This document shows positions 18,608 to 62,291 of a stretch of DNA of 64,000 nt, one piece after another. Numbering within the stretch: position 1 is the first letter of the stretch; the number at the start of each line of letters is the position of its first letter. Under the pieces are notes generated by a model that had not been told where the DNA came from, did no database searches, and was given only the letters and a program-made list of their open reading frames with translations. Made by a program: the position numbers and the translations under genes. The DNA is from Isurus oxyrinchus (lineage: Eukaryota), in assembly GCA_026770705.1 (NCBI GenBank), contig JANJGN010000016.1, forward strand, positions 86,986,001 to 87,050,000, in the 5' to 3' direction.

Positions 18608-18642
18608 TCAGTCTGAGTTTGGTTCCTTTACCGAACGTAACC
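18608..18642 (-). CDS. IGKJ: Ig light chain J segment, cluster 1 (VTFGKGTKLRL)
   Basis: FGxG motif; phase-1 donor A|GTAAGT at 18607-18602; splices in frame to C (A+GC=Ser). Confidence 0.95.
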
Positions 18643-18681
18643 CACACTGAGATCTTCCAGTGCAGGGGCTGTACAAAAACC
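18643..18681 (+). other. 23-RSS of J, cluster 1
   Basis: Heptamer CACACTG 18643-18649, 23-nt spacer, nonamer ACAAAAACC 18673-18681. Confidence 0.96.
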
Positions 18682-18696
18682 TCAGCTCTCTGCTTC

Positions 18697-19690
18697 ACTC
18701 AGTCACTCTCACCCTCTCTCTGTATCCCACTCACACTCACCTTTAACTCACTCTCACCCTCTCTCTGTCTCTCACTCACACTCACCTTTAACTCACTCTC
18801 ACCCTCTCTCTGTCCCTCACTCACACTCAACTTTAACTCACTCTCACCCTCTCTCTGTCTCTCACTCACACTCACCTTTAACTCACTCTCACCCTCTCTC
18901 TGTCTCTCACTCACACTCACCTTTAACTCACTCTCACCCTCTCTCTGTCTCTCACTCACACTCACCTTTAACTCACTCTCACCCTCTCTCTGTCTCTCAC
19001 TCACACTCACCTTTAACTCACTCTCACCCTCTCTCTGTCCCTCACTCACACTCAACTTTAACTCACTCTCACCCTCTCTCTGTCTCTCACTCACACTCAC
19101 CTTTAACTCACTCTCACCCTCTCTGTCTCTCACTCACACTCACCTTTAACTCACTCTCACCCTCTGTCTCTCACTCACACTCACCTTTAACTCACTCTCA
19201 TCCTCTGTCTCTCACTCACACTCACCTTTAACTCACTCTCACCCTCTCTCTGTCTCTCACTCACACTCACCTTTAACTCACTCTCACCCTCTCTCTGTCT
19301 CTCACTCACACTCACCTTTAACTCACTCACACCCTCTCTCTGTCTCTCACTCACACTCACCTTTAACTCACTCGCACCCTCTGTCTCTCACTCACACTCA
19401 CCTTTAACTCACTCTCACCCTCTGTCTCTCACTCACACTCACCTTTAACTCACTCTCACCCTCTGTCTCTCACTCACACTCACCTTTAACTCACTCTCAC
19501 CCTCTCTCTGTCTCTCACTCACACTCACCTTTAACTCACTCTCACCCTCTCTCTGTCTCTCACTCACACTCACCTTTAACTCACTCTCACCCTCTCTCTG
19601 TCTCTCACTCACACTCACCTTTAACTCACTCTCACCCTCTCTCTGTCTCTCACTCACACTCACCTTTAACTCACTCTCACCCTCTCTTTG
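18697..19690. repeat. 45-bp pyrimidine-rich minisatellite (about 22 units) next to the J RSS
   Basis: Unit CTCACTCTCACCCTCTCTCTGTCTCTCACTCACACTCACCTTTAA. Confidence 0.95.
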
Positions 19691-19944
19691 TCTCTGTGCC
19701 TCTCTCACTCACTCAAATCTTTCTTTTTCTCTCTCTCTGTCTCTCAAAGTCCCTGTGTTTTGTTGGGAGAGTTGAGATTTCCAATTTTACATGCTAGATC
19801 TTCCAGCTGTACTTCAAATGTGCACAGGTAGAATTGAGGCCGTCAGTGAGTGGTGGACACCACAGGGACTGGAGTGTGTAGTGGACAGTGAAAATAATTT
19901 GTTCAGTTTCCTTTCTTGTGTTTATTATATATTCTGTCTAACCG

Positions 19945-21312
19945 TGTCAATGCAGCAGATGGGACTATGTGTCCATTATAATATATTCCATGTAACTGTG
20001 GGATGTGTCAGTACAGGAGGTGGTGCTGTGTGTCCATTATTATATATTCTATATAACTGTCGGGTGTGTCAGTACAGGAGGTGGGACTGTGTGTCCATTA
20101 TCATATATTCTATATAACTGTGGGATGTGTCAGTACAGGAGGTGGGACTGTGTGTCCATTATTTTATATTCTATATAACAGTGGGATGTGTCAGTACAGG
20201 AGGTGGGACTGAGTGTCCATTATTATATATTCTATATAACTGTGGGATGTGTCAGGACAGGAGGTGGGACTGTGTGTCCAGTTTATATATTATATCTAAC
20301 TGTGGGATGTGTCAGCACAGGAGGTGGTGCTGTGTATCCATTATTATATATTATATATAACTGTGGGATGTGTCAGTACAGGAGGTGGGACTGAGTGTCC
20401 ATTATTATATATTCTATATAACTGTGGGATGTGTCAGGACAGGAGGTGGGACTGTGTGTCCAGTTTATATATTATATCTAACTGTGGGATGTGTCAGTAC
20501 AGGAGGTGGTGCTGTGTGTCCATTATTATATATTCTATATAACTGTGGGATGTGTCAGTACAGGAGGTGGGACTGTGTATCCATTATTATATATTATATA
20601 TAACTGTGGGATGTGTCAGTACAGGAGATGGTACTGCCTGTCCTTTATTATATATTATATATAACTGTGGGATGTGTCAGTACAGGAGGTGATGCTGTGT
20701 GTCCATTATTATATATTCTATATAACTGTCGGGTGTGTCAGTACAGGAGGTGGGACTGTGCGTCCATTATTATATATTCTATATAACTGTGGGATGTGTC
20801 AGTACAGGAGGTGGATCTGTGTGTTCATTATTATATATTATATATAACTGTGGGATGTGTCAGTACAGGAGGTGGGACTGTGTGTCCATTATTATATATT
20901 ATATATAACTGTGGGATGTGTCAGTACCGGAGGTGGGACTGTGTGTCCATTATTATATATTCTATATAACTGTGGGATGTGTCAGTACAGGAGGTGGTGC
21001 TCTGTGTCCATTATTATATATTCTATATAACTGTGGGATGTGTCAGTACAGGAGGTGGGACTGTGTGTCCATTATTATATATTCTATATAACTGTGGGAT
21101 GTGTCAGTACAGGAGGTGGTGCTGTGTGTCCATTATTATATATTCTATATAACTGTGGGAAGTGTCAGTACCGGAGGTGGGACTGTGTGTCCATTATTAT
21201 ATATTCTATATAACTGTGGGATGTGTCAGTACCGGAGGTGGGACTGTGTGTCCATTATTATATATTCTATATAACTGTGGGATGTGTCAGTACAGGAGGT
21301 GGTGCTGTGTGT
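19945..21312. repeat. 61-bp minisatellite (about 22 units) next to the V RSS
   Basis: Unit ATATAACTGTGGGATGTGTCAGTACAGGAGGTGGGACTGTGTGTCCATTATTATATATTCT. Confidence 0.95.
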
Positions 21313-21317
21313 ATTGA

Positions 21318-21345
21318 GGTTTTTGTCAGGCTCTGTATCACTGTG
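21318..21345 (-). other. 12-RSS of V, cluster 1 (canonical)
   Basis: Minus strand CACAGTG-ATACAGAGCCTG-ACAAAAACC; the V12/J23 configuration is kappa-like. Confidence 0.97.
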
Positions 21346-21640
21346 TAGGGGGAGCTTTGCCACTGCTGACAGTAATAATCAGCGACATCCTCATTCTGTA
21401 CATTGCTGATTGTCAGGGTGAATTGAGTGCCAGATCCACTGCCGGTGAATCGCTCGGATGTTCCTGTGAATCGGTTTTTAGCCCAATAGATCAGGAGAGT
21501 AGGTTTCTGTCCTTCTCGCTGCTGGTACCAACTCAGTTCATTACTAACAGACTGACTGGCCGTACAGGTGATGGTGGCGGTCTGGCCCAGGCTCACTGAC
21601 ACCGGGGGAGACTGGGTCATGGTGATGTCCCCACTGATAC
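21346..21640 (-). CDS. IGKV: Ig kappa-type V exon, cluster 1 (unrearranged)
   Basis: CAG acceptor, then (G)[97 protein letters not shown]; open frame ending at the RSS. Confidence 0.97.
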
Positions 21641-21826
21641 CTGAGGGGTAATAGAGAAACAGAGTGAAGTAAGAACTGTCACACAAAGAGCCTGTAAAAT
21701 GAGATATTGTTAGAGACAGTGACCGTTCCTCTGCTTTCAGCATTTTCCCGTTAATCACAAATCAGTCGAATTGGCTGGAAATGGAGAGCAGGAAAATATT
21801 CACGGTGGAAGGAGAGAGATTTGTAC

Positions 21827-21875
21827 CTGCGATGCAGAATGCCAGAGGCCAGATCAGCTGGATGGCTGAAATCAT
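21827..21875 (-). CDS. Leader exon, cluster 1 (MISAIQLIWPLAFCIA-G)
   Basis: ACCATG start, hydrophobic signal peptide, phase-1 GT donor, 186-nt intron to V. Confidence 0.92.
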
Positions 21876-21935
21876 GGTGTCTGCTCCTGTCCCTGTGCCT
21901 GGTCACTGATAAACTCTCCCTTCACTGGGCTCAGC

Positions 21936-22015
21936 TTTATACAGCTGCAGCCTGTCAGAGTCTCACTGGCTGTTCCTCAGTATGTAAATGGTATCACCCA
22001 GAGAGAACCACGTCA
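21936..22015 (-). promoter_or_regulatory. V promoter, cluster 1: TATAAA, variant octamer ATTTACAT, TGACGTGG
   Basis: Minus-strand TATAAA 21941-21936, ATTTACAT 21989-21982, TGACGTGG 22015-22008; same motifs and spacing in cluster 2. Confidence 0.75.
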
Positions 22016-22234
22016 GCACCTCTCACTTCCTCTCCATCTTTCTCTCTCCCTCTATTTGCCTCTGTTTCACAGTCTCTCTCTCTCCTCTCTCCCTCTCTCT
22101 GTATGCCTACTTATCTCTCTCTCCCTTTCTCTCCCTCCCTTTCTCTCCTCTCTCAATCTCTGTCTCTGCCCCCCATACTCCATCGTTATGGAATTTTCTA
22201 AGTGATCTCTATAAGAGGCGTAATTCCTGGATGT

Positions 22235-25200
22235 GGAGGTGATGGTGTAGTAATAGTGTTGCTGGAGTCGTAATCCAGAGACCGAGGGTAATGTTCTGGG
22301 GACCCAGGGTAATGTTCTGGGGACCCAGGGTAATGTTCTGGGGACCCAGGGTAATGTTCTGGGGACCCAGGGTAATGTTCTGGGGACCCAGGGTAATGTT
22401 CTGGGGACCCAGGGTAATGTTCTGGGGACCCAGGTTTGAATCCTGCCAGATGGTGCAATTTGAATTCATTAAGAACCTGTAATTAAAACTCTTTTGATGA
22501 CCAGGAAACCATTGTCAATTGTTGTAAAAACCCATCTGGTTCACTAATGTCCTTCATGGAAGGAAATCTGCTGGTCTGGCCTACATGTGAGTCCAGACCT
22601 ACAGCAATGTGGTGCACTCTGAAATGGCCCAGCAATCCACTCAGTTGTAATGACCCCCTTCAAGCCACAAAAACGGGATGAAACTGGACGGACTGTTCAG
22701 CATCAGCCTGGGCACCGGAAACGACAATGGCAATCTCAACCCTGCTAAGTCCTCCTCGTTAACATCTGGGGGCTAGTGCCAAAAGTGGGAGAGACATCTC
22801 ACAGATTAGTCAAGCACATAGTCATCCTCACAGAATCATACCTTACATAAAATGTCCCAGACTCCACCGTCACCATCCCTGGGAAATCCTGTCCCACCAG
22901 CAGGACAGGCCCAGCAGAGGTGGTGACACAGTGGTATACAGTCAGGAGGGAATTGCCCTGGGAGTCCTCAACATTGACTCCAGACTCCATGAAGTCTCAT
23001 GGCATCAGGTCAAACAGGGGCAAGGAGACCTCCTGCTGATTACCACGTACCGCCCTCCCTCAGCTGATGAATCAGTGCTCCTCCATGTTGAACACCACTT
23101 GGAGGAAGCACTAAGGGTGGCAAGGGCACAGAATGTACTCTGGGTGGGGGACTTCAATGTCCATCACCGAGAGTGGCTCGGTAGCACCACTACTGACCGA
23201 GCTGGCTGAGTTCTAAAGGACATAGCTGCTAGACTGGGTCTGCAGCAGGTGATGAGGGAACCAACAAGAGGGAAAAACATATTTATCCTCACCAACCTGC
23301 CTGCTACAGATGCATCTGTCCATCACCTTATGGGAAGGAGTCACCACCGCACAGTCCTTGTGGAGGTGAAGTCCCGCCTTCATGTTGAGGATACCCTCCA
23401 TCATGATGTGTGGCGCTACCATTGTGCTAAATGGAATAGCTTGTGAACAGGCCTAGCAACTCAATGAGGATCCATGAGTCACTGTGGGCCATCAGCAGCA
23501 GCAGATTTGCACTCGAACACAATCTGTAACCTCATAGCCCAGCATACCCCCCACTCTACCATTATCATCAAGCCAGGGGATCAACCCTGGTTCCATGAAG
23601 AGTGCAGGAGGACATGCCAGGAGCAGCACCAGGCATACCTAAAACTGAGATGCCAACCTGGTGAAGCTATAACAAAGGACTACTTGCAAGCCAAACAGCA
23701 TAAGCAGCAAGTGATAGACAGAGCTAAGCGATCCCACAACCAACAGATCAGATCTAAGCTCTGCAGTCCTGCCACATCCAGTTGTGAATGGTGGTGGACA
23801 ATTAAACAACTCACTGGAGGAGGAGGCTCCACAAATATCCTCATCCTCAATGATGGGGGAGCCCAGCACATCAGTGCAAAAGATAAGGCTGAAGTATTCA
23901 CATTAATCTTCAGCCAGAAGGGCCGAGTGGATGATCCAATTCGGCCTCCTCTGGAGGTCCCGAGCATCACAGATGCCAGTCTTCAGCCAATTCGATTCAC
24001 TCCACGTGATATCAAGAAGCGGCTGAAGGCACTGGATACTGCACAGGCTATGGGCCCTGATAATATTCCGGCAATAGTACTGAAGACTTGTGTTCCAGAA
24101 CTTGCTGTGCACCTAGCCAAGCTGTTCTAGTACAGCTACAACACTGGCATCTACCCGGCTATGTGGAAAATTGCCCAGGTATGTCCTGTACACAAAAAGC
24201 AGGACAAATTCAACCCGGCCAATTACCGCCCCATCAGTCTACTCTCCATCATCAGTAAAGCAATGGAAGGGGTCATCAACAGTGCTATCAAGCAGCACTT
24301 GCTCAACAATAACCTGCTCACAGATAACCAGTTTGGGTTCCACCAAGGCCACTCAGCTCCTGACCTTAATGCAGCCTTGGTTCAAACATGGACAAAAGAG
24401 CTGAACTCCCGAGATGAGTTGAGAGTGACTGCCTTGACAGCATTTGACTGAGCATGGCATCAAGGAGCCCTAGCAAAACTGGAGTCAATGAGAATCAGGG
24501 GGAAAGTTCTTTGCTGGTTGGAGTCATACCTAGCAGAAAGGAAGATGGTTGTGGTTGTTGGAGGTCAGTCATCTCAGCTCCAGGACATCACTGCAGGAGT
24601 TCCTCAGGATAGTGTCCTCGGCCCAACCATCTACAGCTGCTTCATCAATGACCTTCCTTCCATCATAAGGTCAGAAGTGGGGATGTTCGCTCATGATTGC
24701 ACAATGTTCAGCACCATTCGCAACTCCTCAGATACTGAAGCATTCCATGTCCATATGCAGCAAGACATGGACAATATCCAGGCTTGGGCTGACAAGTGAC
24801 AAGTAACATTCGTGCCACAAAAGTGCTGGCAATGACTATCTCCAACAAGAGAAAATCTAACCATTGCCCCTTGATGTTTAATGGCATTATCATCACTGAA
24901 TCCCCCACTATCAACATCCTGGGGGTTACCATTAACCAGAAACTGAACTGGACTAGCCATACAAATATCCTGGCTACAATAGCAGGTCGGGGGATAGGAA
25001 TTGTGCGATGAGTAACCCACCTCCTGACTCCCCAAAGCCTGTCCACCATCTACAAGACACAAGTCAGGAGTGTGGTGGAATACTTTCCACTTGCCTGGAT
25101 GAGTGCATCTCCCACAACACTCAAGAAGATCAAAACCAGGATAAAGCAGCCAGCTTGATTGGCACCCCTTCCACAAACATTCACTCCCTCCACCACCGAT

Positions 25201-25585
25201 GTACAATAGCAGCAGTGTGTACCATCTACAAGATGCACTGCAGGAATTCACCTCAGCTCCTTAGACAGAACCTGCCAAACCAACGGTCCCTACCATCTAG
25301 AAGGACAAGGGGAGCAGATAGATGGGAACACCACCACCTGGAAGTTCTCCTACAAGCCACACATAATGTCCTGACTTGGAAATATATCACCATTCCTTCA
25401 CTGCCGCTTGGTCGAAATCCTGGAACTCCCTCCCTAACAGCACTGTGGGTGTACCTATACCACATGAACTACAGCAGTTCAAGAAGATAGCTCACCACCA
25501 TCTTCTCAAGTGCAACTAGGGATGGGCAATAAATGCTGGCTCAGCCAGCGAAGCCCACATCCCATGAATGAATAATAAAAAATAA
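22235..25585 (+). mobile_element. Near full-length decayed CR1-group LINE (APE endonuclease plus RT) with a tRNA-SINE-like 5' head
   Basis: APE: YRPPS...VLWVGDFNVHH; RT: NYRPISLLSIISKAME, GVPQDSVLGPTIYSCFINDL...GMFAHDC; A-rich 3' tail at about 25570; multiple stops; absent from the other arm. Confidence 0.85.
22282..22432 (+). repeat. 21-bp tandem repeat (about 7 units)
   Basis: CCCAGGGTAATGTTCTGGGGA repeated. Confidence 0.95.
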
Positions 25586-26839
25586 ATATTGGAACACTTT
25601 GAGTCCTGGTGCAGCAGTTAAATGCTTCCGTCTCTCTCTCACTCAGTCTCACAGACTCGACAACATTGTCCGTCTCTACACTACATCAGACCCTTGACCA
25701 CAGAAACCCTTATCCCTGTTTGTCTTGCCTCCTGACTCCATTATTCCAATATCCTCTCCAAGCTCCATAAACCCCAAATGATCCGAAATGCAGTGTTCCA
25801 AACCCTGTCCTACACAAAGTGTTGTTCCTACACTACCCCTGACCTCACTGACCTGTTACTCCTGACCTCACTGACCTCCAATTCCCTCCATGGCATCACT
25901 CTTCCTTACCTCTGCATCCTGCTGCAGACTCACATTCCCTCCCTCACCCATCCACCTTCTGACTCTGCTCTCCTGCCCATCGCTGCTTCTTTCATCCCAA
26001 CATTGACAGCAGAGCCTTCAGATGCCTAGGCCCAGCTCCCTGAACTCCTGTTCTCTGGGTATCTCCCTCCTGAAAACTCTATCCTTTCACTCAAATATTC
26101 AATTGCTTTCCTTAAGTTCCTCCACCCCCTCCCCCATTCCTATTATTGCTGCTCTGTGAAACATCTTGGGATGTTTGAATGTTAAGGCACTATATAAATT
26201 CAAGCTATATGTTTTTCAGGTGGGGACAGAATTAGATACAGTGGTGATGGCTCCTGCAGTCAAATATCCTGCTGACAGGGTCCAGGCTTCCACACAGTGA
26301 ATGGGGAAGTGATTGAGGCAGGAATGTGCTGACAGGGTCCATGGAAATGTTTCCCAGCCTGAAATGTCCCTCAGGAGTGGAGAGGTAATGTTTGGAGATC
26401 TGAGCTCCATTTCCCACCCCGGGCATTTTGTCTTCCAATGAATGAATGAGATGCCAATTTCGAGCCCAGGTTCGGGACAGTCTCGAAAGATTTGCTGGGT
26501 TATGGGGACAGAGAGTGGGAGTGGGACTCACTGGGTAACTCACAGGCAGGATGGGCTGAATGGCCTCCTTCTGTGCTGTAAGATCTAGGTAGTGGACACG
26601 GTTCACAGTTTTCTCCCGTGTCAGTAACAAACATCCAGCTGCTCTGAGCTCCTTCTTTCACTTCCTCTCTTGGTTACGTTTCAATCTTGCGATCGGACAA
26701 TCTTTGCAGTTATTTTTTACACTGGGGGTTTCTGCTGTGGTCTGAATCTGTAATAATAACTGTCCGATCAGTGAAAAGCACAGCAGCTAAGAGCAGTCAG
26801 GACTGAGGAGGCAGGCTCACTGGGAAACACATTGGGAAG

Positions 26840-27990
26840 ATCAAAGCCATCGTCTTCAGCTCCCGATACAAACTCCATCCCTCTCCCTGAGCACTGTCTG
26901 CTGCTGAACCAGACTCCTTACAACCTTGGCCTCATCTTTCTGCTCCTCCACAGCTGCCAGCATCTCACCATTTACAAATTACTCTGATCCATCTTTCTTT
27001 GGTCCAAAGTGGATGATTTCACACTCCCCACGTTGAGCTCCATCTGCCATTGTCTTCAGTCCCCATCACAAACTCTGTTCCCTCATCACCGATTCCATCC
27101 CTCTCCCTGGGTCTGTCTGACACTGAACCACACAGTTCACAGCCATGGTGTCCAGTTTGACCCTGAGATGAGCTTCTGACCACATCATCCGCTCCATCAC
27201 TAAGAGAGCCTATTTCCACCTCGGTAACATCGCCCGAGTCTGGCCTGCCTCAGACCATCTGCTGCTGAGAATCTCCTCCATGTCTTTGTTCCCTGAAACG
27301 TGACGATTCCAATGCTGCCCTGGCCGGAGTCACACCTTCCACACTCCGTAAACATGAGCTCATCCCAAACTCTGCTGCCCGGATCTGAACTCACACCAAG
27401 TCCCGTTCACCCATCACCCCCTTGTGCTCACTGACCTCCCAGCCCAGCAATGTCTCGATTTTAAAATTCTCATCCTTGTTCTCAAATCCCTCTCGGTCCT
27501 CGACACTCCCCATCTCTGTAACCTCCTCCAAGCCGCCTAACTTAGTGTCATCAGCAATCTTGGATATATGGCTCTCTATTTCTTCATCCAAATCATTGAT
27601 AAATATTGTGGAAAGCTGAGTCTCCAGCACAGATCCCTGGGGACATCACTATTCACATCTTGCTCATTGGAGCACATACACATTATCCCTTCTCTCTGTC
27701 TCCTGCCTCCTAACCAGTTCCTTATCCATGGCAACAGGTTTCCTCAAATTCCATCTGCTTCCATTTTTATTCACAGTCTCTCATGTTGAATTTTCTCGAA
27801 TGTCTTCTGGAAATCCATATCAATCACTTCCATATACATTCCCGAATCTACCACATTAGTGACCTCCTTAAAAAACGTAACCAGGTTAGTTAAAGATGTC
27901 TGACCCTTTTTAAATCCATGCTGACTCTCTCTGATCAGTTCATATTTATCACTCATTCTGTCTCTAATAACAGGTTCCAGTCACTTCCCC
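26840..27990. mobile_element. Nested L2 (+) and CR1 (-) fragments, duplicated at about 54550-55690
   Basis: FDPEMSF.PH/AYFHLGNIAR-type L2 remnant; ELIRESQHGFKKGQTSLTNL and [26 protein letters not shown]1 RT remnants. Confidence 0.75.
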
Positions 27991-28630
27991 ATTACAGACA
28001 TTAAACTGAGAGGTTAGTTCTGAATGATCCGAGTGCACAGCTAGCACAGACACAAGGGGCTGAATGGCCTCCTCCTGTGCTATAGGCTTATCAGGCTCCT
28101 TGACTGAAACATATGGATGGGAACAGGAGGTGGGCTGGAGCTTAAACAATGAGTTAAATGTAGACAGAGTGTCATTAGTGGGTAATGTACAGTGTACATT
28201 GTGTCCATGAGCCTCTCGAAAAGATGTCTTTCTCTTTTTCCCTTTTCAGCTCCAGGCCTCTCATTAAGGAGCTGAAAGAATATTTAGTGAAGAAGTTTGC
28301 GGAGTGTGCGGGCTGTGTGAAGGATTTCGGCAGTGACTGATGATTGCAGCTCCTTGTTCAGTCTGCTCCTCCCTCACCACTGAACAAGACATGTAACCTC
28401 GTGTCACACTGAGTGAGATTACAATCAATATCATAGCGTCAGTCACAGAAAACAACAGCATCACAGTCTGAGACACTGGGACAGATATCACTGCGTCACG
28501 TCAAAGAACAGAGCCCTGATCCCCTCCCACCATGCTCAGAAACCATAGAGCATCGAAAATATACTGACAAACACCCCCTTATATTCAACACTCACACCCA
28601 GAGAACATCTACAGAGGGACAAGGCAGGAT

Positions 28631-28771
28631 NNNNNNNNNNNNNNNNNNNNNNNNNNNNNNNNNNNNNNNNNNNNNNNNNNNNNNNNNNNNNNNNNNNNNN
28701 NNNNNNNNNNNNNNNNNNNNNNNNNNNNNNNNNNNNNNNNNNNNNNNNNNNNNNNNNNNNNNNNNNNNNNN
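28631..28771. other. Assembly gap (N run)
   Basis: 141 N. Confidence 1.
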
Positions 28772-29079
28772 GAGATAGGGCAAGGGAGAGCGACAGAGAG
28801 TGTGAGAGAGAGATAGAGAGAAAGAGACAGAGTGAGGGAGAGACAGGGAGATGGAAAGAGAGACAGAGCGAGAGAGAGGGACAGTGAGGTGGATAGATAG
28901 GTATAGAGGGAGAGCGACAGAGAGTGTGAGAAAGAGAGAGATAAAGTGAGAGATAGTGAGAGAGAGGGATTGGTTAGTGTGAGTGAGAGAGAGAGAGAGG
29001 GAGAGAGAGAGTGAGAGAGAGGGATGTGTTTGTGTGAGTGAGAGAGACTCTGTGTCAGCTCCTGTACCTGTCAGAGTGA

Positions 29080-29335
29080 AGAAGTCTTATTATAATTCTA
29101 TCGGACATCGGTGAGACCACAGCTAGATTACTGTGTACAGATTCGGTCTCTTTACCTAAGGAAGGATATACCAGCCTTGGAAGAGATTCCCCAGAGTGAT
29201 TCCTGGGATGAGGGGATTGTCCGATGAGGAGAGATTGAGTAGACTGGGACATTATTCCCTGGAGTTTAGAAGAATGAGAGGAGATCCCATTGAAACATAT
29301 AAAATTCTTAAAGTGATTGACAGGGTAGAGAGTGA
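29080..29335 (+). mobile_element. CR1 3' RT fragment (inverted paralog at about 53515-53780)
   Basis: IPGMRGLSDEERLSRLGHYSLEFRRMRGDPIETYKILK. Confidence 0.8.
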
Positions 29336-32297: not shown

Positions 32298-32339
32298 GAG
32301 GCTGCAGATGGTGGCTGGTCCAGGGAGGCAGGTGATCTT

Positions 32340-34722: not shown

Positions 34723-34724
34723 AC

Positions 34725-47634: not shown

Positions 47635-47635
47635 T

Positions 47636-49052
47636 ATAGATAAGCCAAGGAACTATAGGCCAGTGAGTCTCACATCAGTGGTAGGGAAACTATTGGAGAA
47701 AGTTCTGAAGGAGAGTATCTATCTCCACTTGGAGAGGCAAGGTTTGATCAGGGATTGTCAGCATGGCTTTGTCAGAGGGAGGTCATCCCTAACAAATTTG
47801 ATTGAATGTTTTGAGGAGGTGACCAGGTGTGTAGATAAGGGTAGAGCAGATGATGTAGTTTATATGGATTTCAGCAAAGCCTTTGACAAGTTCCCACATG
47901 GGAGAATTATAAAGAAGGCAAATGGACATGGGATACAGGGTAATTTGATAAGATGGATTCAAAATTGGTTTAGTTGTAGGAGACAGAAGGTGATGACAGA
48001 AGGATACTTTAGTGACTGGAAGCCAGTGTCCAGTGGCGAACCACAGGGATCTGTGCTGGGTCCCCTATTATTCGTCATTTATATAAACAACATAGATGAC
48101 TATGTGGGGGTAGGATTAGTAAGTTTGCGGATGACACAAAGATTGGCCGAGTGGTTAACAGTGAGGCTGAGAGTCTTGGGCTACAGGAAGATATAGACAG
48201 GATGGTCAAATGGGCAGATAAGTGGCAGATGGAATTTAACCCTGAAAAGTGTGAGGTGATACATTTTGGAAGGAGTAATTTGACAAGGAAGTATTCAATG
48301 AATGGCATGACACTAGGAAGTTCTAAGGAACAAAGGGACATTGGCGTGAGTGTCCATAGATCTCTGAAGGCGGAGGGGCATGTTAGTGGGGTGGTGAAAA
48401 AGACATATGGGACACCTGCCTTTATCAATTGAGGCACAGATTACAAAATTTGGGAGGTCATGTTGGAGTGTATAGAACCTTGGTGAGGTCACTGCTGGAG
48501 TACTTTGTGCAGTTCTGGTCGCCACAATATAGGAAGGATGTGATAGCGCTGGAGGGGGTGCAGAGGAGATTCAACAGGATGTTGCCTGGGATGAAACATT
48601 TAAGATATGAAGAGAGGTTGGATAGACTTGGGTCGTTTTTGTTGGAGCAGAGAAGACTGAGTGGTGACCTGATCGAGGTGTACAAGATTATGAGGGGCAT
48701 GGACAGGGTGGATAGGGGGCAGCTGTTCCCCTTAGTTGAAGGGTCAGTTATGAGGGGACATAAGTTCAAGGTGAGGGGCAGGAGGTTTAGGGGGGATGTG
48801 AGGGGAACATTTTTTACCCAGAGGGTGGTGACAGTCTGGAATGCATTGCCTGGGAGGGTGGTGCAGGCGGGTTGCCTCACATCATTTAAAAAGTACCTGG
48901 ATGAGCCCTTGGCATGTCATAACATTCAAGGCTATGGGCCAAGTGCAGGTAAATGGGATTAGGTAGGAAGGTCAGGTGTTTCTCACATGTCAGTGTAGAC
49001 TCGATGGGCTGAAGGGCCTCTTCCCCACTGTGTGATTCTGTGATTCTCTGAT
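47636..49052 (+). mobile_element. CR1 LINE RT 3' portion, decayed
   Basis: NYRPVSLTSVVGKLLE, VVYMDFSKAFDK, FADDTKIG and FFTQRVVTVWNALP; ATTCTGTG tail. Confidence 0.93.
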
Positions 49053-49128
49053 TGTGTGAATAGTCTTGTTATAAACGAACCGTTCCGATGAGTGACCATA
49101 ATGTGATAGAATTTACATTATGTTTGGA

Positions 49129-49692
49129 AATGTACAGACTGGATTGTGAAGTGTGATGTACCTGAGTACACAGACTGGATTGTGAAGTGTGATGTACCTG
49201 AGTATACAGACTGGATTGTGAAGTGTGATGTACCTGAGTACACAGACTGGATTGTGAAGTGTGATGTACCTGAGTATATAGACTGGATTGTGAAGTGTGA
49301 AGTACCTGGGTACACAGACTGGATTGTGAAGTGTGATAAACCTGAGTACACAGACTGGCTTGTGAAGTGTGATGTACCTGAGTACACAGACTGGATTGTG
49401 ATGTGTGTTGTACCTGAGAACACAGACTGGATTGTGAATTGTGATGTACCTGAGTACACAGACTGGATTGTGAAGTGTGATGTACCTGAGTACACAGACT
49501 GGATTGTGAAGTGTGATGTACCTGAGTACACAGACAGGATTGTGAATTGTGATATACCTGAGTACATGGACAGGATTGTGAATTGTGATGTACCTGAGTT
49601 CACGGACTGGATTGTGAAGTGTGATGTACCTGAGTACACAGACTGGATTGTGAAGTGTGTTGTACCTGAGTACACAGACTGGACTGTGAAAT
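49129..49692 (-). repeat. 36-bp satellite array 3 (about 15 units), inverted
   Basis: Reverse complement of the same consensus. Confidence 0.97.
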
Positions 49693-50189
49693 GTAACATC
49701 ACCAATAAGTAGCCATTGTTAAACAATATTAATGACATTTTGCTGAGCTTCATATTAATAAAATTTTATTGTAGCTTTTTGCAGATCTTTATATATTGGC
49801 ACAATAATCTGGTCTGCATATATTACTGTATATTGATAACATATGTTTGTAATACATATTTTATTTCATATAATATGATACATATGACTTATTACTCAGG
49901 TTTCTCTATATATTACTCAGCAGGATATATCATCACTAACATTTTAACTATGTAGTGACACAGCTCTGATAACCATATTAATCAAGATTTAATTGTATCT
50001 TTCATTCTCTCTGTGTTTACTGACACAATTCTCTGGTTCGTGGGTTACCCTATGTACAAACCATCTGTGATGTCCTTGGAGTAATGGCTCAAACTGACTT
50101 CATCAAACTGACATTCCAAATAGGCCGACATTGTTCATAACGGGATTAACTGTAATTGGCTCAGATCTGAGCATCAGCAACTAAAATAG

Positions 50190-52250
50190 AGAGAGGGATG
50201 GAGGTCAATTAGGGGGAGAGGTGAAAGTCAAATAGAGAAGGGTTGGAGGTCAGATAGACAGAGAGGTGGAGGTTAGGTAGAGAAAGGGATAGAGTTCAGA
50301 TAGAGGGTTGGAGGTCAGATAGAGAGAGTGATGGAGGTCAGATAGAGACAGGAATGAGGTGCTGAAACGCAGAGTGATGGAGGTCAGATAGAGACAGGAA
50401 TGAAGGGCTGAAACGTAGAGTGATGGAGGTCAGATGGAGCGAGGGATGGCTGGAGCTCAGGTAGAGAGAGGAGTGGAGGTCAGATAGAGAGAGATATGGA
50501 GGTCAGATTGGGATAGGTGTGGAGGACAGGTAGAAAGAGGGATGGAGCTCAGATAGAGAGAATGATGAAGGTCAGTTAGAGAGAGGGATGGAGCTCAGAT
50601 AGAGAGAGAAATGAAGGTCTGAAATACAGAGTGATGGAGGTAAGATGGACCGAGGAATGGAGGTCAGGTGGAGAGATGGCTGAAGGTCAGATAGCGAGAG
50701 GGATGAATGTCTGAAATGCAGAGTGAGGGAGGTCAGATGGAGCGAGGGATGGATGCCAAATGGGGAGAGGGATGGAGGTCAGATAGAGAGAGGGATGGAG
50801 GTCAGAAAGAGAGAGGGATGGAGTCAGATAGAGAGAGGGATGGAGGTCAGAAAGAGAGAGGGATGGAGATCAGATAGAGAGAGGGATAGAGGTCAGATAG
50901 AGAGAGGGATGGAGTCAGATAGAGAGAGAGATGGAGTCAGATAGAGAGAGGGATGGAGGTCAGATAGAGAGAGGGATGGAGTCAGATAGAGAGAGGGATG
51001 GAGGTCAGAAAGAGAGAGGGATGGAGATCAGATAGAGAGAGGGATAGAGGTCAGATAGAGAGAGGGATGGAGTCAGATAGAGAGAGAGATGGAGTCAGAT
51101 AGAGAGAGGGATGGAGTCCGACAGAGAAAGGGATGGAGTCACATAGAGAGAGGGATGGAGTCAGATAGAGAGAGGGATGGAGTCAGATAGAGAGAGGGAT
51201 GAAGGTCAGATAGAGAGAGGGATGGAGGTCAGATAGAGAGAGGGATGAAAGTCGGAAATGCAGAGTGGGGGAGGTCAGATGGAGCGAGGGATGGAGGCCA
51301 AATGGGGAGAGGGATGGAGGTCAGATAGAGAGAGGGATGGAGGTCAGATAGAGAGAGGGATGGAGGTCAGATAGAGAGAAGGATGAAGGTCAGATAGAGA
51401 GAGGGATGGAGTCCGATAGAGAAAGGGATGGAGTCACATAGAGAGAGGGATGGAGTCAGATAGAGAGAGAAATGAAGGTCAGATAGAGAGAGGGATGGAG
51501 TCAGATAGAGAGAGAGATGAAGGTCAGATAGAGAGAGGGATGGAGGTCAGATAGAGAGAGGGATGAAAGTTGGAAATGCAGAGTGAGGGAGCTCAGATGG
51601 AGCGAGGGATGGAGGCCAAATGGGGAGAGGGATGGAGGTCAGATAGAGAGAGGGATGGAGGTCAGATAGAGAGAGGGATGGAGGTCAGATAGAGAGAGGG
51701 ATGGAGGTCAGATAGAGAGAGGGATGGAGTCAGATCGAGAGAGGGATGGAGGTCTGAAACGCAGAGTGATGGAGGTCAGATGGAGCGAGAGATAGAGGTC
51801 AGGTGGAGAGATGGCTGGAGCTCAGGTAGAGAGAGGGATGGAGGTCAGATAGGGAGAGGGGTGGAGGACAGGTAGAGAGAGAGATGGAGGTCAGCTAGAG
51901 GGATGGCTGGAGTCCAGATAGAGAGTAGGCTGGAGATCAGAAAGAGAAGAGTAGAGGTCAGATGGAGAGAGGGATGGAGGTTGGAGAGAAAGACGGATGG
52001 AGGTTGGAGAGAAAGACGGATGGAGATCAGACAGAGAGAGGGATGGAGGCCACATAGAGAGAGGGATGGAGGTCAGATAGAGAGAGGGATGGAGGTCAGA
52101 GCGAGAGGGATGGAGGTTGGATATAGAGTGGAATAGAGGTCAGATAACTACAGGGATGGAGGTCAGAGAGAGAGAGATGGAGGTCAGATAGAGAGAAGGT
52201 GGAAGTCAGATAGAGAGAGATGGAGGTCAGATAGAGAGAGGGATGGAGGC
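50190..52250. repeat. Purine-rich about 23-bp degenerate repeat
   Basis: GAGAGAGGGATGGAGGTCAGATA and variants. Confidence 0.92.
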
Positions 52251-52299
52251 CTGTTCAGGAGAGGCATGGAGCTCGGATACACCGAAGGGTGAAGCTCAG

Positions 52300-53180
52300 T
52301 GAGGTGTGTATCTGAGAGGAAGTTCGGTCCCTCAGGGAGAGGGATGGTGATCAGGGAGGTGTATATCTGAGAGGAGGGTCGGACACTCAGAGGGAGGGAT
52401 AGAGATCAGGGAGGTGTGTATCTCAGAGGAAGGTCGGACACTCAGAGGGAGGGATGGAGATCAGGGAGGTGTGTATCTGAGAGGAAGGTCGGACACTCAG
52501 AGGGAGGGATAGAGATCAGGGAGGTGTGTATCTCAGAGGAAGGTCGGACACTCAGAGGGAGGGATGGAGATCAGGGAGGTGTGTATCTGAGAGGAAGGTC
52601 GGACACTCAGAGGGAGGGATAGAGATCAGGGAGGTGTGTATCTGAGAGGATGGTCGGACATTCAGAGGGAAGGATGGTGATCAGGGAGGTGTGTAACTGA
52701 GAGGAAGGTGGGACACTCAGAGGGAGGGATGGAGATCATGGAGGTGTGTTACTGAGAGGAAGGTGGGACACTCAGAGGGAGGGATGGAGATCAGGGAGGT
52801 GTGTTTCTGAGAGGAAGGTCGGACACTCAGAGGGAGGGATGGAGATCAGGGAGGTGTGTATCTGAGAGGAAGGTCGGACACTCAGAGGGAGGGATGGAGA
52901 TCAGGGAGGTGTGTATCTGAGAGGAAGGTCGGACACTCAGAGGGAGGGATGGAGATCAGGGAGGTGTGTATCTGAGAGGAATTTCGGACACTCAGAGGGA
53001 GGGATGGAGATCAGGGAGGTGTGTATCTGAGAGGAAGGTCGGACACTCAGATGGAGGCTTGCAGATCAGGGAGGTGTGTATCTGAGAGGAAGGTCGGACA
53101 CTCAGAGGGAGGGATGGAGATCAGGGAGGTGTGTATCTGAGAGGAAGGTCAGACAATCAGAGGGAGGGATGGAGATCAGG
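52300..53180. repeat. 55-bp minisatellite (about 16 units)
   Basis: GATCAGGGAGGTGTGTATCTGAGAGGAAGGTCGGACACTCAGAGGGAGGGATGGA. Confidence 0.95.
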
Positions 53181-53971
53181 TGGAACGAGGTTACTGTCCA
53201 TTCTCACCACCTGTGCTGCAGTTTGTTGCAGACTAACCTGTTGCTCTGTGGTTCCCCACTTAATGCAATCCCCTTGCTCCCTCCCTTTCAGCCTCTCTCA
53301 ATCCACACCACCACTTCTTCCCTGTAGGGAATGGGATTGAGCCAGTAACCCAGAGGGGATGAGTTCAAATCCCAGGATGGGAATTAGTGAAATGGAATTG
53401 GATCAATCTGATCATTTGTGTTCTGGCTGCAGAAATTGTCCTTAAATCCTGCTGGATTGCTGTAAAACACAAGGGACTCAGTGAGGGAAGCTGCCGGTCT
53501 CACCCTCTCACTCTCTACCCTGTCAATCACTTTAAGAATTTTATATATTTCAATGGGATCACCTCTCATTCTTCTAAACTCCAGGGAATAATGTCCCAGT
53601 CTACTCAATCTCGCCTCATCGGACAATCCCCTCATCCCAGGAATCACTCTGGGGAATCTCTGCTGCACTCCTTCCAAGGCTGGTATATCCTTCCTTAGGT
53701 AAGGAGACCGAATCTGTACACAGTAATCCATGTGTGGTCTCACCGAGGTTCGATAGAATTATAATAAGACTTCTTCACTCTGACAGGTACAGGAGCTGAC
53801 ACAGAGTCTCTCTCTCTCACGCGAACCCATCCCTCTCTCTCACTCTCTCTCTCGCTCTCTCCCTCTCTCTCAATCTCTGTCGATCTCTCCATCTCCCTCC
53901 CTATCACTCACACTAACTCATTCATCTCATCCCTCTCTCTCACTCTCTGTCTCTCACTCTCTCTCTCTCTC

Positions 53972-54003
<32 letters not shown>

Positions 54004-54137
54004 AATCTCTGTCGCTCTCTCCATCTCCCTCTCTCTCACTCACACTAACCCATCCCTCTTTCCAGCTCTCTCGCTCTCAATCTCTGTCGATCTCTCCATC
54101 TCCCTCCCTATCACTCACACTAACTCATTCATCTCCT

Positions 54138-54286
54138 NNNNNNNNNNNNNNNNNNNNNNNNNNNNNNNNNNNNNNNNNNNNNNNNNNNNNNNNNNNNNNN
54201 NNNNNNNNNNNNNNNNNNNNNNNNNNNNNNNNNNNNNNNNNNNNNNNNNNNNNNNNNNNNNNNNNNNNNNNNNNNNNNNNNNNNNN
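54138..54286. other. Assembly gap (N run)
   Basis: 149 N. Confidence 1.
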
Positions 54287-56261
54287 TGTCCCTCTGTAGA
54301 TGTTCTCTGGGTGTGAGTGTTTAATATAAGGGGGTGTTTGTCAGTATATTTTCGATGCTCTATGGTTTCTGAGCATGGTGGGAGGGGATCAGGGCTCTGT
54401 TCTTTGACGTGACGCAGTGATATCTGTCCCAGTCTCTCAGACTGTGATGCTGTTGTTTTCTGTGACTGACGCTATGATATTGATTGTAATCTCACTCAGT
54501 GTGACACGAGGTTACATGTCTTGATCAGTGGTGAGGGAGGAGCAGACTGGAACCTGTTATTAGAGACAGAGTGAGTGATAAATATGAATTGATCAGAGAG
54601 AGTCAGCATGGATTTAAAAAGGTTCAGACATCTTTAACTCACCTGGTTACATTTTTTAAGGAGGTCACTAATGTGGTAGATCAGGGAAAGTCTATTCTAT
54701 TGATATGGATTTCCAGAAGGCATTTGAGAAAATTCAACATGAGAGACTGTGAATAAAAATGGAAGCAGATGGAATTTGAGGAAACCTGTTGCCATGGATA
54801 AGGAACTGGTTAGGAGGCAGGAGACAGAGAGTAGGGATAATGTGTATGTGCTCCAATTAGCAAGATGTGAATAGTGATGTCCCCAGGGATCTGTGCTGGA
54901 GCCTCAGCTTTCCACAATATTTATCAATGATTTGGATGAAGAAATACAGAGCCATATATCCAAGATTGCTGACGACACTAAGTTAGGCGGCTTGGAGGAG
55001 GTTACAGAGATGGGGAGTGTCGAGGACTGAGAGGGATTTGAGAACAAGGATGAGAATTTTAAAATCGAGACATTGCTGGGCTGGGAGGTCAGTGAGTACA
55101 GGGGGTGATGGGTGAACGGGACTTGGTGTGAGTTCAGATCCGGGCAGCAGAGTTTGGGATAAGCTCATGTTTACGGAGTGTGGAAGGTGTGACTCCGGCC
55201 AGGGCAGCATTGGAATCGTCACGTTTCAGGGAACAAAGACATGGAGGAGATTCTCAGCAGCAGATGGTCTGAGGCAGGCCGGACTCGGGCGATGTTACCG
55301 AGGTGGAAATAGGCTCTCTTAGTGATGGAGCGGATGATGTGGTCGGAAGCTCATCTCAGGGTCAAACTGGACACCATGGCTGTGAACTGTGTGGTTCAGT
55401 GTCAGACAGACCCAGGGAGAGGGATGGAATCGGTGATGAGGGAACAGAGTTTGTGATGGGGACTGAAGACAATGGCAGATGGAGCTCAACGTGGGGAGTG
55501 TGAAATCATCCACTTTGGACCGAAGAAAGATGGATCAGAGTAATTTGTAAATGGTGAGATGCTGGCAGCTGTGGAGGAGCAGAAAGATGAGGCCAAGGTT
55601 GTGAAGAGTCTGGTTCAGCAGCAGACAGTGCTCAGGGAGAGGGATGGAGTTTGTATCGGGAGCTGAAGACGATGGCTTTGATCTTCCCAATGTGTTTCCC
55701 AGTGAGCCTGCCTCCTCAGTCCTGACTGCTCTTAGCTGCTGTTCTTTTCACTGATCGGACAGTTATTATTACAGATTCAGACCACAGCAGAAACCCCCAG
55801 TGTAAAAAATAACTGCAAAGATTGTCCGATCGCAAGACTGAAACGTAACCAAGAGAGGAAGTGAAAGAAGGAGCTCAGAGCAGCTGGATGTTTGTTACTG
55901 ACACGGGAGAAAACTGTGAACCGTGTCCACTACCTAGAATCTTACAGCACAGAAGGAGGCCATTCAGCCCATCCTGCCTGTGAGTTACCCAGTGAGTCCC
56001 ACTCCCCCTCTCTGTCCCCATAACCCAGCAAATCTTTCCTTTTCAGGGAGATTTCCAATTCCCTCTTGTAGACCTGGGTCCACAGCTCGAGACTGTCCCG
56101 AACCTGGGCTCGAAATTGGCATCTCATTCATTCATTGGAAGACAAAATGCCCGGGGTGGGAAATGGAGCTCAGATCTCCAAACATTACCTCTCCCCTCCT
56201 GAGGGACACGTCATGCTGGGATACATTTCGATGGAACCCGGGAGCACAACACGGGGGAGGC

Positions 56262-56400
56262 TGTGGGGTAGCAGCAATGTTACTGGACCAGTAATCCAGA
56301 GGTCCAGGGTAACGCTCTGGGGTCACACCTTCAAATCCCACCCCGGCAGCTGGTGGAATTTAAATTGAATTAATAAATCCAGAATTAAAAGTTAGTCTCC
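56262..56400 (+). mobile_element. 5' fragment of a tRNA-derived SINE
   Basis: GTAATCCAGAGGTCCAGGGTAACGCTCTGGGG...TTCAAATCCC, similar to the head at 22240-22470. Confidence 0.55.
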
Positions 56401-56742
56401 GTCTGCAGCAGAACACAGAGGTAGGGAGGAGCGAGGCCATGGAGGGAATTGGAGGGCCATGAGGTCAGGGGTTACAGATCAGTGAGGTCAGGGATAATCT
56501 GGGAACAACACTTCATGTGGCACAGGGTATGGAACGCTGCATTTCGGACAATTGGGATTTATGGAGCGTGGATGAAGGAAGGCGGGAGAGGACATCGGAA
56601 TAATGGAGTCCGGGGACGAGACAAACAGGGCTAAGGGTTTCCGTGGTCAAGGGGCTGATGTAGTGTAGAGACGGACAATGTTGTGGAGATGGAAATGAGA
56701 GGCTTACGGGTTGGAGAGATGTGGAGTTTGAAGCTCAGATAC

Positions 56743-57028
56743 TGGAGGCCCAATGGGAAGGAGGCCCATGTTTACTGGTCCCTATTGGAGGCTCCAGTGG
56801 GAAGGAGGCCCATGTTTACTGGTCCCTATTGGAGGGTCCAGTGGGAAGGAGGCCCATGTTTACTGGTCTCTATTGGAGGCTCCAGTGGGAAGGAGGCCCA
56901 TGTTTACTGGTCCCTATTGGAGGGTCCAGTGGGAAGGAGGCCCATGTTTACTGGTCCCTATTGGAGGGTCCAGTGGGAAGGAGGCCCATGTTTACTGGTC
57001 CCTATTGGAGGTTCCAGTGGGAAGGAGG
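56743..57028. repeat. 44-bp minisatellite (about 6.5 units) upstream of the cluster 2 promoter
   Basis: TGGAGGGTCCAGTGGGAAGGAGGCCCATGTTTACTGGTCCCTAT. Confidence 0.93.
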
Positions 57029-57288
57029 CAGAGAGAGGGAGAGAAAGATAGAGAGCGATGGACAGAGGGAGGGAGATAAAGACAGCGTGACGGACAGACA
57101 TTGAGAGAGACAGTGACTGACAGACTGGTACTGAGAGAGGGAGAGAGTGACAGAGAGTGATGGCAGATTCTGAGAGAGAGAGAGACAGAGAGTGATGGAC
57201 AGACACTGGGACAGGGAGAGAGAGACAGAGTGTGATGGACAGATACTGAGAGAGGGAGGGAGAGAGTTGAAGAGGAAGTGAAAGGTGC

Positions 57289-57368
57289 TGACGTGGTTCT
57301 CTCTGGGTGATACCATTTACATACTGAGGAACAGCCAGTGAGACTCTGACAGGCTGCAGCATTATAAA
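57289..57368 (+). promoter_or_regulatory. V promoter, cluster 2: TGACGTGG, variant octamer ATTTACAT, TATAAA
   Basis: TGACGTGG 57289-57296, ATTTACAT 57315-57322, TATAAA 57363-57368, ATG at 57429. Confidence 0.75.
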
Positions 57369-57428
57369 GCTGAGCCCAGTGAAGGGAGAGTTTATCAGTG
57401 ACCAGGCACAGGGACAGGAGCAGACACC

Positions 57429-57477
57429 ATGATTTCAGCCATCCAGCTGATCTGGCCTCTGGCATTCTGCATCGCAG
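57429..57477 (+). CDS. Leader exon, cluster 2 (MISAIQLIWPLAFCIA-G)
   Basis: ACCATG, G|GTAC donor, 186-nt intron. Confidence 0.92.
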
Positions 57478-57663
57478 GTACAAATCTCTCTCCTTCCACC
57501 GTGAATATTTTCCTGCTCTCCATTTCCATCCAATTCGACTGACTTGTGATTGAAGGGAAAATGCTGAAAGCAGAGGAACGGTCATTGTCTCTAACAATAT
57601 CTCATTTTACAGGCTCTTTGTGTGACAGTTCTTACTTCACTCTGTTTCTCTATTACCCCTCAG

Positions 57664-57958
57664 GTATCAGTGGGGACATCACCATGACCCAGTCTCCCCT
57701 GGTGTCAGTGAGCCTGGGCCAGACCGCCACCATCACCTGTACGGCCAGTCAGTCTGTTAGTAATGAACTGAGTTGGTACCAGCAGCGAGAAGGACAGAAA
57801 CCGACTCTCCTGATCTATGATGCAACAACTCGATTCACAGGAACATCCGAGCGATTCACCGGCAGTGGATCTGGCACTCAATTCATCCTGACAATCAGCA
57901 ATGTACAGAATGAGGATGTCGCTGATTATTACTGTCAGCAAACTGACAGCTTCCCCTA
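57664..57958 (+). CDS. IGKV: Ig kappa-type V exon, cluster 2 (unrearranged)
   Basis: [94 protein letters not shown]. Confidence 0.97.
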
Positions 57959-57986
57959 CACTGTGATACAGAGCCTGACAAAAACC
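57959..57986 (+). other. 12-RSS of V, cluster 2 (heptamer variant CACTGTG)
   Basis: CACTGTG-ATACAGAGCCTG-ACAAAAACC. Confidence 0.95.
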
Positions 57987-57991
57987 TCAAT

Positions 57992-58905
57992 ACACACAGC
58001 ACCACCTCCTGTACTGACACATCCCACAGTTATATAGAATAAATAATAATGGACACACTGTCCCACCTCCTGTACTGACACATCCCACAGTTATATAGAA
58101 TATATAATAATGGACACACTGTCCCACCTCCTGTATTGACACATCCCACAGTTATATAGAATATATAATAATGGACACACAGTCCCACCTCCTGTACTGA
58201 CACATCCCACAGTTATATAGAATATATAATAATGGACACACAGTCCCACCTCCTGTACTGACACATCCCACAGTTATATAGAATATATAATAGTGGACAC
58301 ACAGTCCCAGATCATGTACTGACACATCCCACAGTTATATTTAATATATAATAAAAGACACACAGTCCAACCTCCTGTACTGACACATCCCACAGTTATA
58401 TAGAATATATAATAATGGACACACATTCCCACCTCCTGTACTGATACATCCCATAGTTATATAGAATATATAATAATGGACACACAGTCCCACCTCATGT
58501 ACTGACACATCCCACAGTTATATAGAATATATAATATGGACACACAGTCCCACCTCCTGTACTGACACATCCCACAGTTATATAGAATATATAATAAAGG
58601 ACACACAGCATCAAATCCTGTACTGACACATCCCACAGTTATATAGAATATATAATAACGGACACACAGTCCCACCTCCTGTACTGACACATCCCACAGT
58701 TATATAGAATATATAATAATGGTCACACAGTCCCACCTCCTGTACTGACACATTCCCCAGTTATATATCGTATATAATAATGGACACACAGTCTCACCTC
58801 CTGTACTGACACATTCCACAGTTATATAGAATATATAATAATGGACACACAGTCCCACCTCCTGTACTGACACATCCCACAGTTATATAGAATTTATAAT
58901 AATGG
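57992..58905. repeat. 61-bp minisatellite (about 15 units)
   Basis: Inverted paralog of 19945-21312. Confidence 0.95.
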
Positions 58906-59029
58906 TCACTTTACCTCTTACCCTACATGTCCACATATGAAGAGCAGCTGAAAGATTTATCATATAAAATTGGGATTCTCAATTCTCCCAACAAAAAAAA
59001 GACATTGAGAGGAAGAGAGAGGGAAAGAG

Positions 59030-59265
59030 AGAGTGTTAAAGGTGAGTGTGAGTGAGAGACAGAGAGAGGGTGAGAGTGAGTTAAAGATGAGTGTGAGTGA
59101 GAGACAGAGAGAGGGTGAGAGTGAGTTAAAGGTGAGTATGAGTGAGAGACAGAGAGAGGGTGAGAGTGAGTTAAACTAGAGTGTGAGTGAGAGACAGAGA
59201 GAGGGTGTGAGTGAGTTAAAGGTGAGTGTGAGTGAGAGACAGAGTGAGGGTGAGAGTGACTGAGT
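59030..59265. repeat. 45-bp minisatellite (about 5 units)
   Basis: Inverted paralog of 18697-19690. Confidence 0.9.
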
Positions 59266-59280
59266 GAAGCAGAGAGCTGA

Positions 59281-59319
59281 GGTTTTTGTACAGCCCCTGC
59301 ACTGGAAGCTCTCAGTGTG
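59281..59319 (-). other. 23-RSS of J, cluster 2
   Basis: GGTTTTTGT 59281-59289, 23-nt spacer, CAGTGTG 59313-59319. Confidence 0.96.
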
Positions 59320-59354
59320 GGGTTCGTTCGGTAAAGGAACCAAACTCAGACTGA
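59320..59354 (+). CDS. IGKJ: Ig light chain J segment, cluster 2 (GSFGKGTKLRL)
   Basis: FGKGTKL motif and A|GTAAGT donor. Confidence 0.95.
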
Positions 59355-62235: not shown

Positions 62236-62291
62236 GGAAGTTGAAATACATTATAATGACAGTGATTAAAATTCCTTCTCTTCCATTTCAG

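Follow-up and report, generated by a model that had tools for sequence, protein, structure and literature searches.

A divergent pair of germline-unjoined kappa-type miniclusters in a lamniform shark, with signals suited to inversional joining

A 64,000-nt stretch of the genome of Isurus oxyrinchus (contig JANJGN010000016.1, positions 86,986,001-87,050,000; hereafter the window) contains two complete variable-joining-constant (V-J-C) miniclusters of the kappa-type immunoglobulin (Ig) light chain (IgL). Both are unjoined in the germline and they are divergent, cluster 1 being encoded by the minus strand and cluster 2 by the plus strand. We think it probable that they are a real inverted pair, in which joining takes place mainly within each cluster by deletion and cross joins between the clusters arise as a minor by-product rather than as a selected device. 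Under this scenario, an inverted segmental duplication in a lamniform shark genome would have given each of its arms one complete, unjoined kappa-type minicluster, and exchange between the arms would keep parts of both genes alike. In the usual shark way, V1 would join J1 by deletion across 2.7 kb and V2 would join J2 across 1.3 kb; the RAG recombinase might also join across the pair by inversion, at a lower level, if both units were open in one cell.

Two complete units facing away from each other

Each cluster consists of a leader exon and one V-set exon, one J and one C1-set exon, all in a single orientation, with cluster 1 spanning 6.1 kb and cluster 2 spanning 5.2 kb (Table 1). The two units face away from each other and their ATGs are separated by 35.55 kb, which bears out a preliminary description of this DNA as holding two intact head-to-head kappa clusters on opposite strands about 35 kb apart; its coordinates for the segments and their recombination signal sequences (RSSs) all agreed with ours on re-examination. 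The cluster-specific tags that it had proposed were likewise read correctly, namely the complementarity-determining region 2 (CDR2) motif WAKN for V1 and the motif GSF for J2, to which DATT in V2 and VTF in J1 are the counterparts. So was the 3' untranslated region (UTR), which is one 69-nt unit shorter in cluster 2 (3.0 copies) than in cluster 1 (4.1 copies). Open frames, leaders, splice sites and the Cys/Trp/Cys landmarks are present in both V genes, and both genes are predicted to be functional; the acceptor of the C1 exon was set by the reading frame from the J donor. A tblastn search with V1 and C detected no additional V or C in the window, and neither a third V, J or C nor a lone RSS of the kappa-deleting type was found there.

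Table 1. Positions of the light chain segments, their recombination signals, the duplicated arms and the interruptions of the assembly, in window coordinates
Feature	Position	Strand	Remarks
V1 leader exon	21827-21875	-	ATG at 21875
V1 exon 2	21346-21640	-	V-set, E 1e-17; CDR2 WAKN, CDR3 QQWQSSPY
V1 12-RSS	21318-21345	-	CACAGTG, 12-nt spacer, ACAAAAACC; full consensus; left of V1 coding part
J1 23-RSS	18643-18681	-	GGTTTTTGT, 23-nt spacer, CAGTGTG; right of J1 coding part
J1 coding part	18608-18642	-	VTFGKGTKLRL, followed by GTAAGT donor
C1 exon	15770-16098	-	C1-set, PF07654, E 8e-26; ends in SECA, then stop
V2 leader exon	57429-57477	+	Identical to V1 leader
V2 exon 2	57664-57958	+	V-set, E 1e-16; CDR2 DATT, CDR3 QQTDSFPY
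V2 12-RSS	57959-57986	+	CACTGTG, 12-nt spacer, ACAAAAACC; right of V2 coding part
J2 23-RSS	59281-59319	+	GGTTTTTGT, 23-nt spacer, CAGTGTG; left of J2 coding part
J2 coding part	59320-59354	+	GSFGKGTKLRL
C2 exon	62292-62620	+	C1-set, E 8e-26
V1-J1 interval arrays	18703-21312		45-nt array, 22.6 copies; 61-nt array, 22.5 copies
V2-J2 interval arrays	57992-59259		61-nt array, 15.1 copies; 45-nt array, 5.6 copies
Arm 1 (carries cluster 1)	14768-32296	-	Collinear antiparallel matches to 63552-49134
Arm 2 (carries cluster 2)	49134-63552	+	Collinear antiparallel matches to arm 1
Central spacer	32297-49133		16.8 kb; tandem arrays, LINE reverse-transcriptase pieces, Myb/SANT-like open reading frame; no Ig segment
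N run, arm 1	28631-28771		Place homologous to 54138-54286
N run, arm 2	54138-54286		Place homologous to 28631-28771
N run, J2-C2 intron	61396-61645		V2-J2 and C2 on either side, same strand

The recombination signals set these segments apart from the rest of the window. In a scan of both strands for CAC-type heptamers accompanied by a nonamer (at most two mismatches) at a spacing of 11-13 or 22-24 nt, a perfect nonamer at the proper distance from a CAC heptamer was recovered at four sites only, those of V1, V2, J1 and J2. Read in RSS orientation, the signals of J1 and J2 are both CACACTG, 23 nt and ACAAAAACC; their heptamers are each one place off consensus, and the two signals differ by a single base of the spacer, which is A in J1 (18653) and C in J2 (59309). 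The V signals are told apart by heptamer position 4, CACAGTG in V1 (A at 21342) as against CACTGTG in V2 (T at 57962). Between the signals of each cluster, the same two tandem arrays fill the V-J interval, so that the V-J spacing is stretched to 2.7 kb in cluster 1 and 1.3 kb in cluster 2, a departure from the described cartilaginous-fish kappa miniclusters.

Comparison of the coding parts reveals that the two genes are very close. The leader exons are 100% identical, the C exons are identical at all 325 of the 325 nt compared, and J1 and J2 differ at two bases, both at the 5' end, where joining often trims, whereas the differences between the V1 and V2 exons are almost confined to CDR2 and CDR3. 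Within the promoter-proximal 140 nt only two bases differ.

Word searches placed the V1 exon closest to V segments of the bamboo shark and the cloudy catshark (74-83% identity), its best named tetrapod matches are kappa V (KV401, Ig kappa chain V-IV; 59-65%), and mammalian kappa V range over 59-67%. These V similarities together with the 12/23 layout, rather than the C domain, support the kappa label; the matches of the C exon among solved structures are mostly multi-domain heavy chains. Sigma light chains share the arrangement of a 12-RSS at V and a 23-RSS at J, so the layout by itself does not set the present genes apart from sigma. No protein from the same species or from another lamniform matched the V1 exon in the word search, the length window of which left out full light chains. 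The same search returned an 89-aa protein (P0012) filed under Salmonella enterica and encoded on a 299-nt contig, which is 86% identical to the V1 exon and can almost certainly be put down to vertebrate DNA contaminating a bacterial assembly.

Joining within and between the clusters

Cross pairing of the segments (V1 with J2, or V2 with J1) gives legal 12/23 pairs whose signals are about 38-39 kb apart and oriented for inversion. As V1 and J2 lie on opposite strands with both signals to the left of their coding ends, their joining must invert the DNA between them: cuts between 21345 and 21346 and between 59319 and 59320 would turn round 21346-59319 (37,974 nt), which would create a coding joint, V1-J2-C2, on the plus strand and leave the signal joint in the chromosome. 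After this inversion V2, now on the minus strand, would be in deletional orientation to J1 at a distance of about 4.0 kb, the two V-J intervals of 2.7 and 1.3 kb added together; the mirror path, beginning with V2-J1, is equally legal. The inversional geometry put forward in the preliminary description, including the later deletional V2-J1 step, is correct: given clusters of opposite polarity, the 12/23 rule leads to it. Clusters of opposite polarity lying close together on one chromosome with compatible RSSs, the layout on which inter-cluster joining depends, are present here, with the adjacency derived from homology as described below.

The same description had contrasted intra-cluster joining in sharks with inversional inter-cluster IgL joining in teleosts, and this is a fair account of the literature. 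Shark segments are described as sharing one polarity and as joined within clusters (PMC5192425, PMC3014032; intra-cluster joining also in PMC12227049), shark clusters are described as lying farther apart than those of teleosts (PMC3014032, PMC5192425), and the first demonstration of inversional joining between IgL clusters was made in zebrafish (Zimmerman et al. 2008, PMC3014032, PMC5192425). The nurse shark IgH loci are given as at least 120 kb apart, with 120 kb for the one pair measured (PMC2435157), and a 2025 paper calls the genomic distribution of shark miniclusters "not well known" (PMC12227049). The literature searched, which leaves out most subscription papers, yielded no description of inverted kappa clusters paired in this way in cartilaginous fish.

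Set against the known systems, the two units most resemble the cartilaginous-fish kappa (type III/NS4) miniclusters, with a 12-RSS at V, a 23-RSS at J, segments unjoined in the germline, and a V that is nearest to shark V and then to mammalian kappa V; unlike the described examples, they are an inverted pair 35 kb apart. In this respect they recall the zebrafish IgL clusters, where V-J-C units of opposite polarity, again with V 12-RSSs and J 23-RSSs, lie close on one chromosome and where, as here, inversion would retain the intervening DNA for a later join. However, the zebrafish clusters contain several V and differing C, as against a single V per unit and identical C in the shark, and the zebrafish joins were shown by cDNA fitted to sequenced bacterial artificial chromosomes, whereas the shark pair is known from germline DNA alone. 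Mouse Igk shares with the pair near-consensus kappa-type signals and V segments opposite to J that can be joined only by inversion with a retained signal joint (PMC11153149, PMC13190342), but it is a translocon of more than 100 V, four J and one C with dedicated CTCF elements (Cer/Sis), while the shark pair comprises two self-contained units with one CTCF-like core match in the spacer between them. Mouse lambda, too, consists of a few small V-J-C units on one chromosome, which join mostly within a unit and rarely leap between units (summarised in PMC3014032); unlike those of the shark pair, its units share polarity, so that such a leap proceeds by deletion and the unit lying between is lost.

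Each J has its own V convergent at 1.3 or 2.7 kb and the other V in inversional orientation at about 38-39 kb, with signals near consensus throughout, and the own partner is 14 to 30 times nearer than the partner in the other cluster. In the mouse, nearby convergent signals are preferred when the J recombination centre scans along chromatin, and the joining of kappa segments by inversion requires strong signals together with diffusional capture over a short range (PMC11153149, PMC13190342). Measured against these mouse rules, a V that is near and convergent and another that is far and inversional would lead one to expect that intra-cluster deletion dominates. There are two grounds for expecting cross joining to remain minor: competition from the nearer partner is strong, and a cross-joined product would be altered at no more than two CDR3 residues.

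Three considerations pull the other way. The orientation of the clusters across three runs of N in the assembly is drawn from internal homology rather than from reads. Inverted segments of Tcrb and Tcrd located 10-40 kb away are used readily in mammals, and cross joins are perhaps not minor at such distances. Finally, the published statement that sharks join within clusters only was drawn from distant clusters of the same polarity and is silent on a pair such as this one. A detectable rate of inversional joining in shark B cells, first of V1 to J2 and then of V2 to J1, is accordingly a tentative proposal, one that we lean against while taking it seriously. If true, RAG would for the first time be seen to join Ig segments of a cartilaginous fish by inversion and between clusters, and the "within cluster only" rule would reflect distance and polarity, not a dedicated restriction.

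Candidate regulatory sites bear on whether the two units could open together. Upstream of the V1 leader are an octamer-like site (ATTTACAT) and a TATAAA. A site resembling the Ets-IRF composite element (EICE), GAGGAAGTGAAAG, occupies homologous places in the two arms (26656-26665 on the minus strand and 55857-55866 on the plus strand) inside a 97.7% identical block, followed in both after 17 nt by a CAGCTG E-box; this combination is 4.8 kb upstream of the V1 ATG and 1.6 kb upstream of the V2 ATG. A third EICE-like copy, at 57274-57283 (plus strand), precedes the V2 ATG by 150 nt; its GAAA is replaced by GAGA in cluster 1. The matching EICE-like and E-box candidates make a joint opening of the two units plausible.

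The preliminary description had gone further and proposed that the four possible V-J pairs make the locus a miniature combinatorial one, intermediate between cluster and translocon organisation. In its strongest form this would be a combinatorial or editing locus in which inversional joining is frequent and useful, V and J combine in four ways and V2-J1 follows as a second step, by deletion. Such a role could draw on the legal and correctly oriented 12/23 pairs with near-consensus signals only about 38-39 kb apart, on the same candidate enhancer-like site upstream of V in each arm, through which both units may open together, and on the precedents of zebrafish IgL, which joins in this way (PMC3014032), and of mouse Igk, with its inversional joining by diffusional capture and strong signals (PMC11153149). 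Nevertheless, we regard it as unlikely. With identical C exons and J segments that differ at just two 5' bases, which are often trimmed, the protein gain from cross joining would be close to nil: the four combinations hold at the level of DNA but appear nearly empty at the level of protein, where they would give almost the same products as the two intra-cluster pairs, and any gain in antibody diversity would be negligible. Either joining route allows two attempts per chromosome, so that cross joining adds no extra chance of editing, and the much nearer own partner again tells against frequent inversion. Nor is the intermediate organisation supported, as several V upstream of a shared J and C, the hallmark of a translocon, are not found in the window.

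We also considered whether one or both clusters might be silent copies that take part in no joining despite their intact frames. The variant V2 heptamer, the two J heptamers each one place off consensus and the GAGA of cluster 1 opposite the GAAA of cluster 2 in the promoter-proximal EICE-like site could be read in this way, but no exon, splice site or signal is damaged in either cluster, the promoter-proximal regions differ at only two of 140 nt, and the V differences are placed in CDR2 and CDR3, as expected under selection for diversity of binding; on these grounds silence of either copy seems improbable. Among 24 sequencing runs recovered with the V1 block, all of them Logan contig sets from three organisms and none recorded as RNA, those guessed to be RNA shared 0.2-0.3 of its words, about 0.6 of the block being exonic; this is a weak signal against silence that is not specific to either cluster.

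The locus has an interest that is independent of diversity. Shark Ig genes are the textbook example of self-contained miniclusters that never mix, a behaviour that reviews credit to wide spacing and shared polarity, and a close inverted pair, in which both barriers are removed together, offers a natural experiment on the reason why they stay apart. Cross joins, if found, would indicate that the rule is one of geometry; if absent, they would point to an active restriction per cluster, with a bearing on light-chain exclusion in sharks. The pair comes with built-in markers for such a test, namely one base each in the V heptamer and the J spacer, together with the cluster-specific DNA in the middle of the J-C intron.

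The inverted arms and the runs of N

Comparison of the window with itself reveals that each cluster is carried by an arm of an inverted duplication, the arms matching in blocks of 87-99% identity that are interrupted by unrelated inserts. The homology ends at 14768 and 63552, the right side then continuing with 448 nt of unrelated flank. Identity is distributed as a mosaic. The first 443 nt of the J-C intron are identical at 442 positions, the 3' UTR and its flank are 98% identical and the upstream block at 26485-27982 is 97.7% identical, compared with 87-92% in the inner parts of the arms; the middle of the J-C intron (about 16.1-17.9 kb in cluster 1 and 60.1-62.2 kb in cluster 2) is largely unalignable, with a single weak match of 73% over about 290 nt. 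This pattern fits an older duplication followed by later exchange between the arms over the gene parts, which would have kept those parts alike.

The N runs lie outside the coding parts, and the continuity of the reading frames is therefore not at stake. All three adjoin GA-rich low-complexity DNA on one side. For the two in the arms, homology provides an anchor on either side: 28359-28621 corresponds to 54549-54287 (260/263 identical), and 28777-29343 corresponds to 54105-53500 (507 of 606 aligned columns, counting gaps). Both arms hence have the same pair of flanks, in the same order, on the two sides of their N run, and the piece between these runs, 28772-54137, which is itself free of N, contains the inner ends of both arms in inverted order. 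The setting of the runs is more in keeping with letters lost locally during sequencing, or masked on purpose, than with unrelated contigs having been joined. We infer that the sequence is continuous across them, and the adjacency and orientation of the two clusters are likely to be real because the flanks of the N runs are collinear between the arms.

A head-to-head layout produced by the assembly, with a contig turned the wrong way at an N run or a single cluster represented twice by its two haplotypes, is highly improbable. In its favour, the outer arm parts are set off from the middle piece by the three N runs, the exons are nearly identical between the copies and the best DNA runs contained 0.54 of the sampled words of the V1 block. 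Against it, the inverted inner arm ends share one piece with no N run within it, both arm N runs connect the identical pair of homologous flanks in the same order, V2-J2 and C2 agree in strand across the third, and the homology stops at the limits of the unit, beyond which a retained haplotype would go on matching. Moreover, the copies differ by kilobase inserts, by the copy numbers of their arrays, by the middle of the J-C intron and by V changes focused on the CDRs, which is unlike alleles or a chimeric palindromic read. The latter was ruled out separately, the arms being 87-99% alike rather than identical and separated by 16.8 kb of unique spacer.

The spacer and its repeats

The 36-nt satellite that opens the window (1-8929, 248 copies) recurs at 30592-32296 and 49134-49694, at the inner ends of arms 1 and 2, in inverted orientation. 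In the GC-rich middle of the spacer is a single match to the CTCF-like core, CCTCCAGGTGGCA, at 37054 (plus strand), where shuffling leads one to expect 0.27; if bound, this site could split the two units into different loops.

Reverse-transcriptase pieces of the long interspersed nuclear element (LINE) type (RVT_1) occur in the spacer on the plus strand at 43872-44537 (E 3e-22) and 47663-48196 (E 2e-17), and a related repeat is also present at 11856-12613 and 33538-34716. The spacer further contains a 291-aa open reading frame (35277-36152, minus strand) with a Myb/SANT-like DNA-binding domain, for which the Pfam E-value of about 1e-4 is at or below the cut-offs and the Atlas score to Myb_DNA-bind_5 clusters is 0.91; it could be a transposon-related or a host gene.

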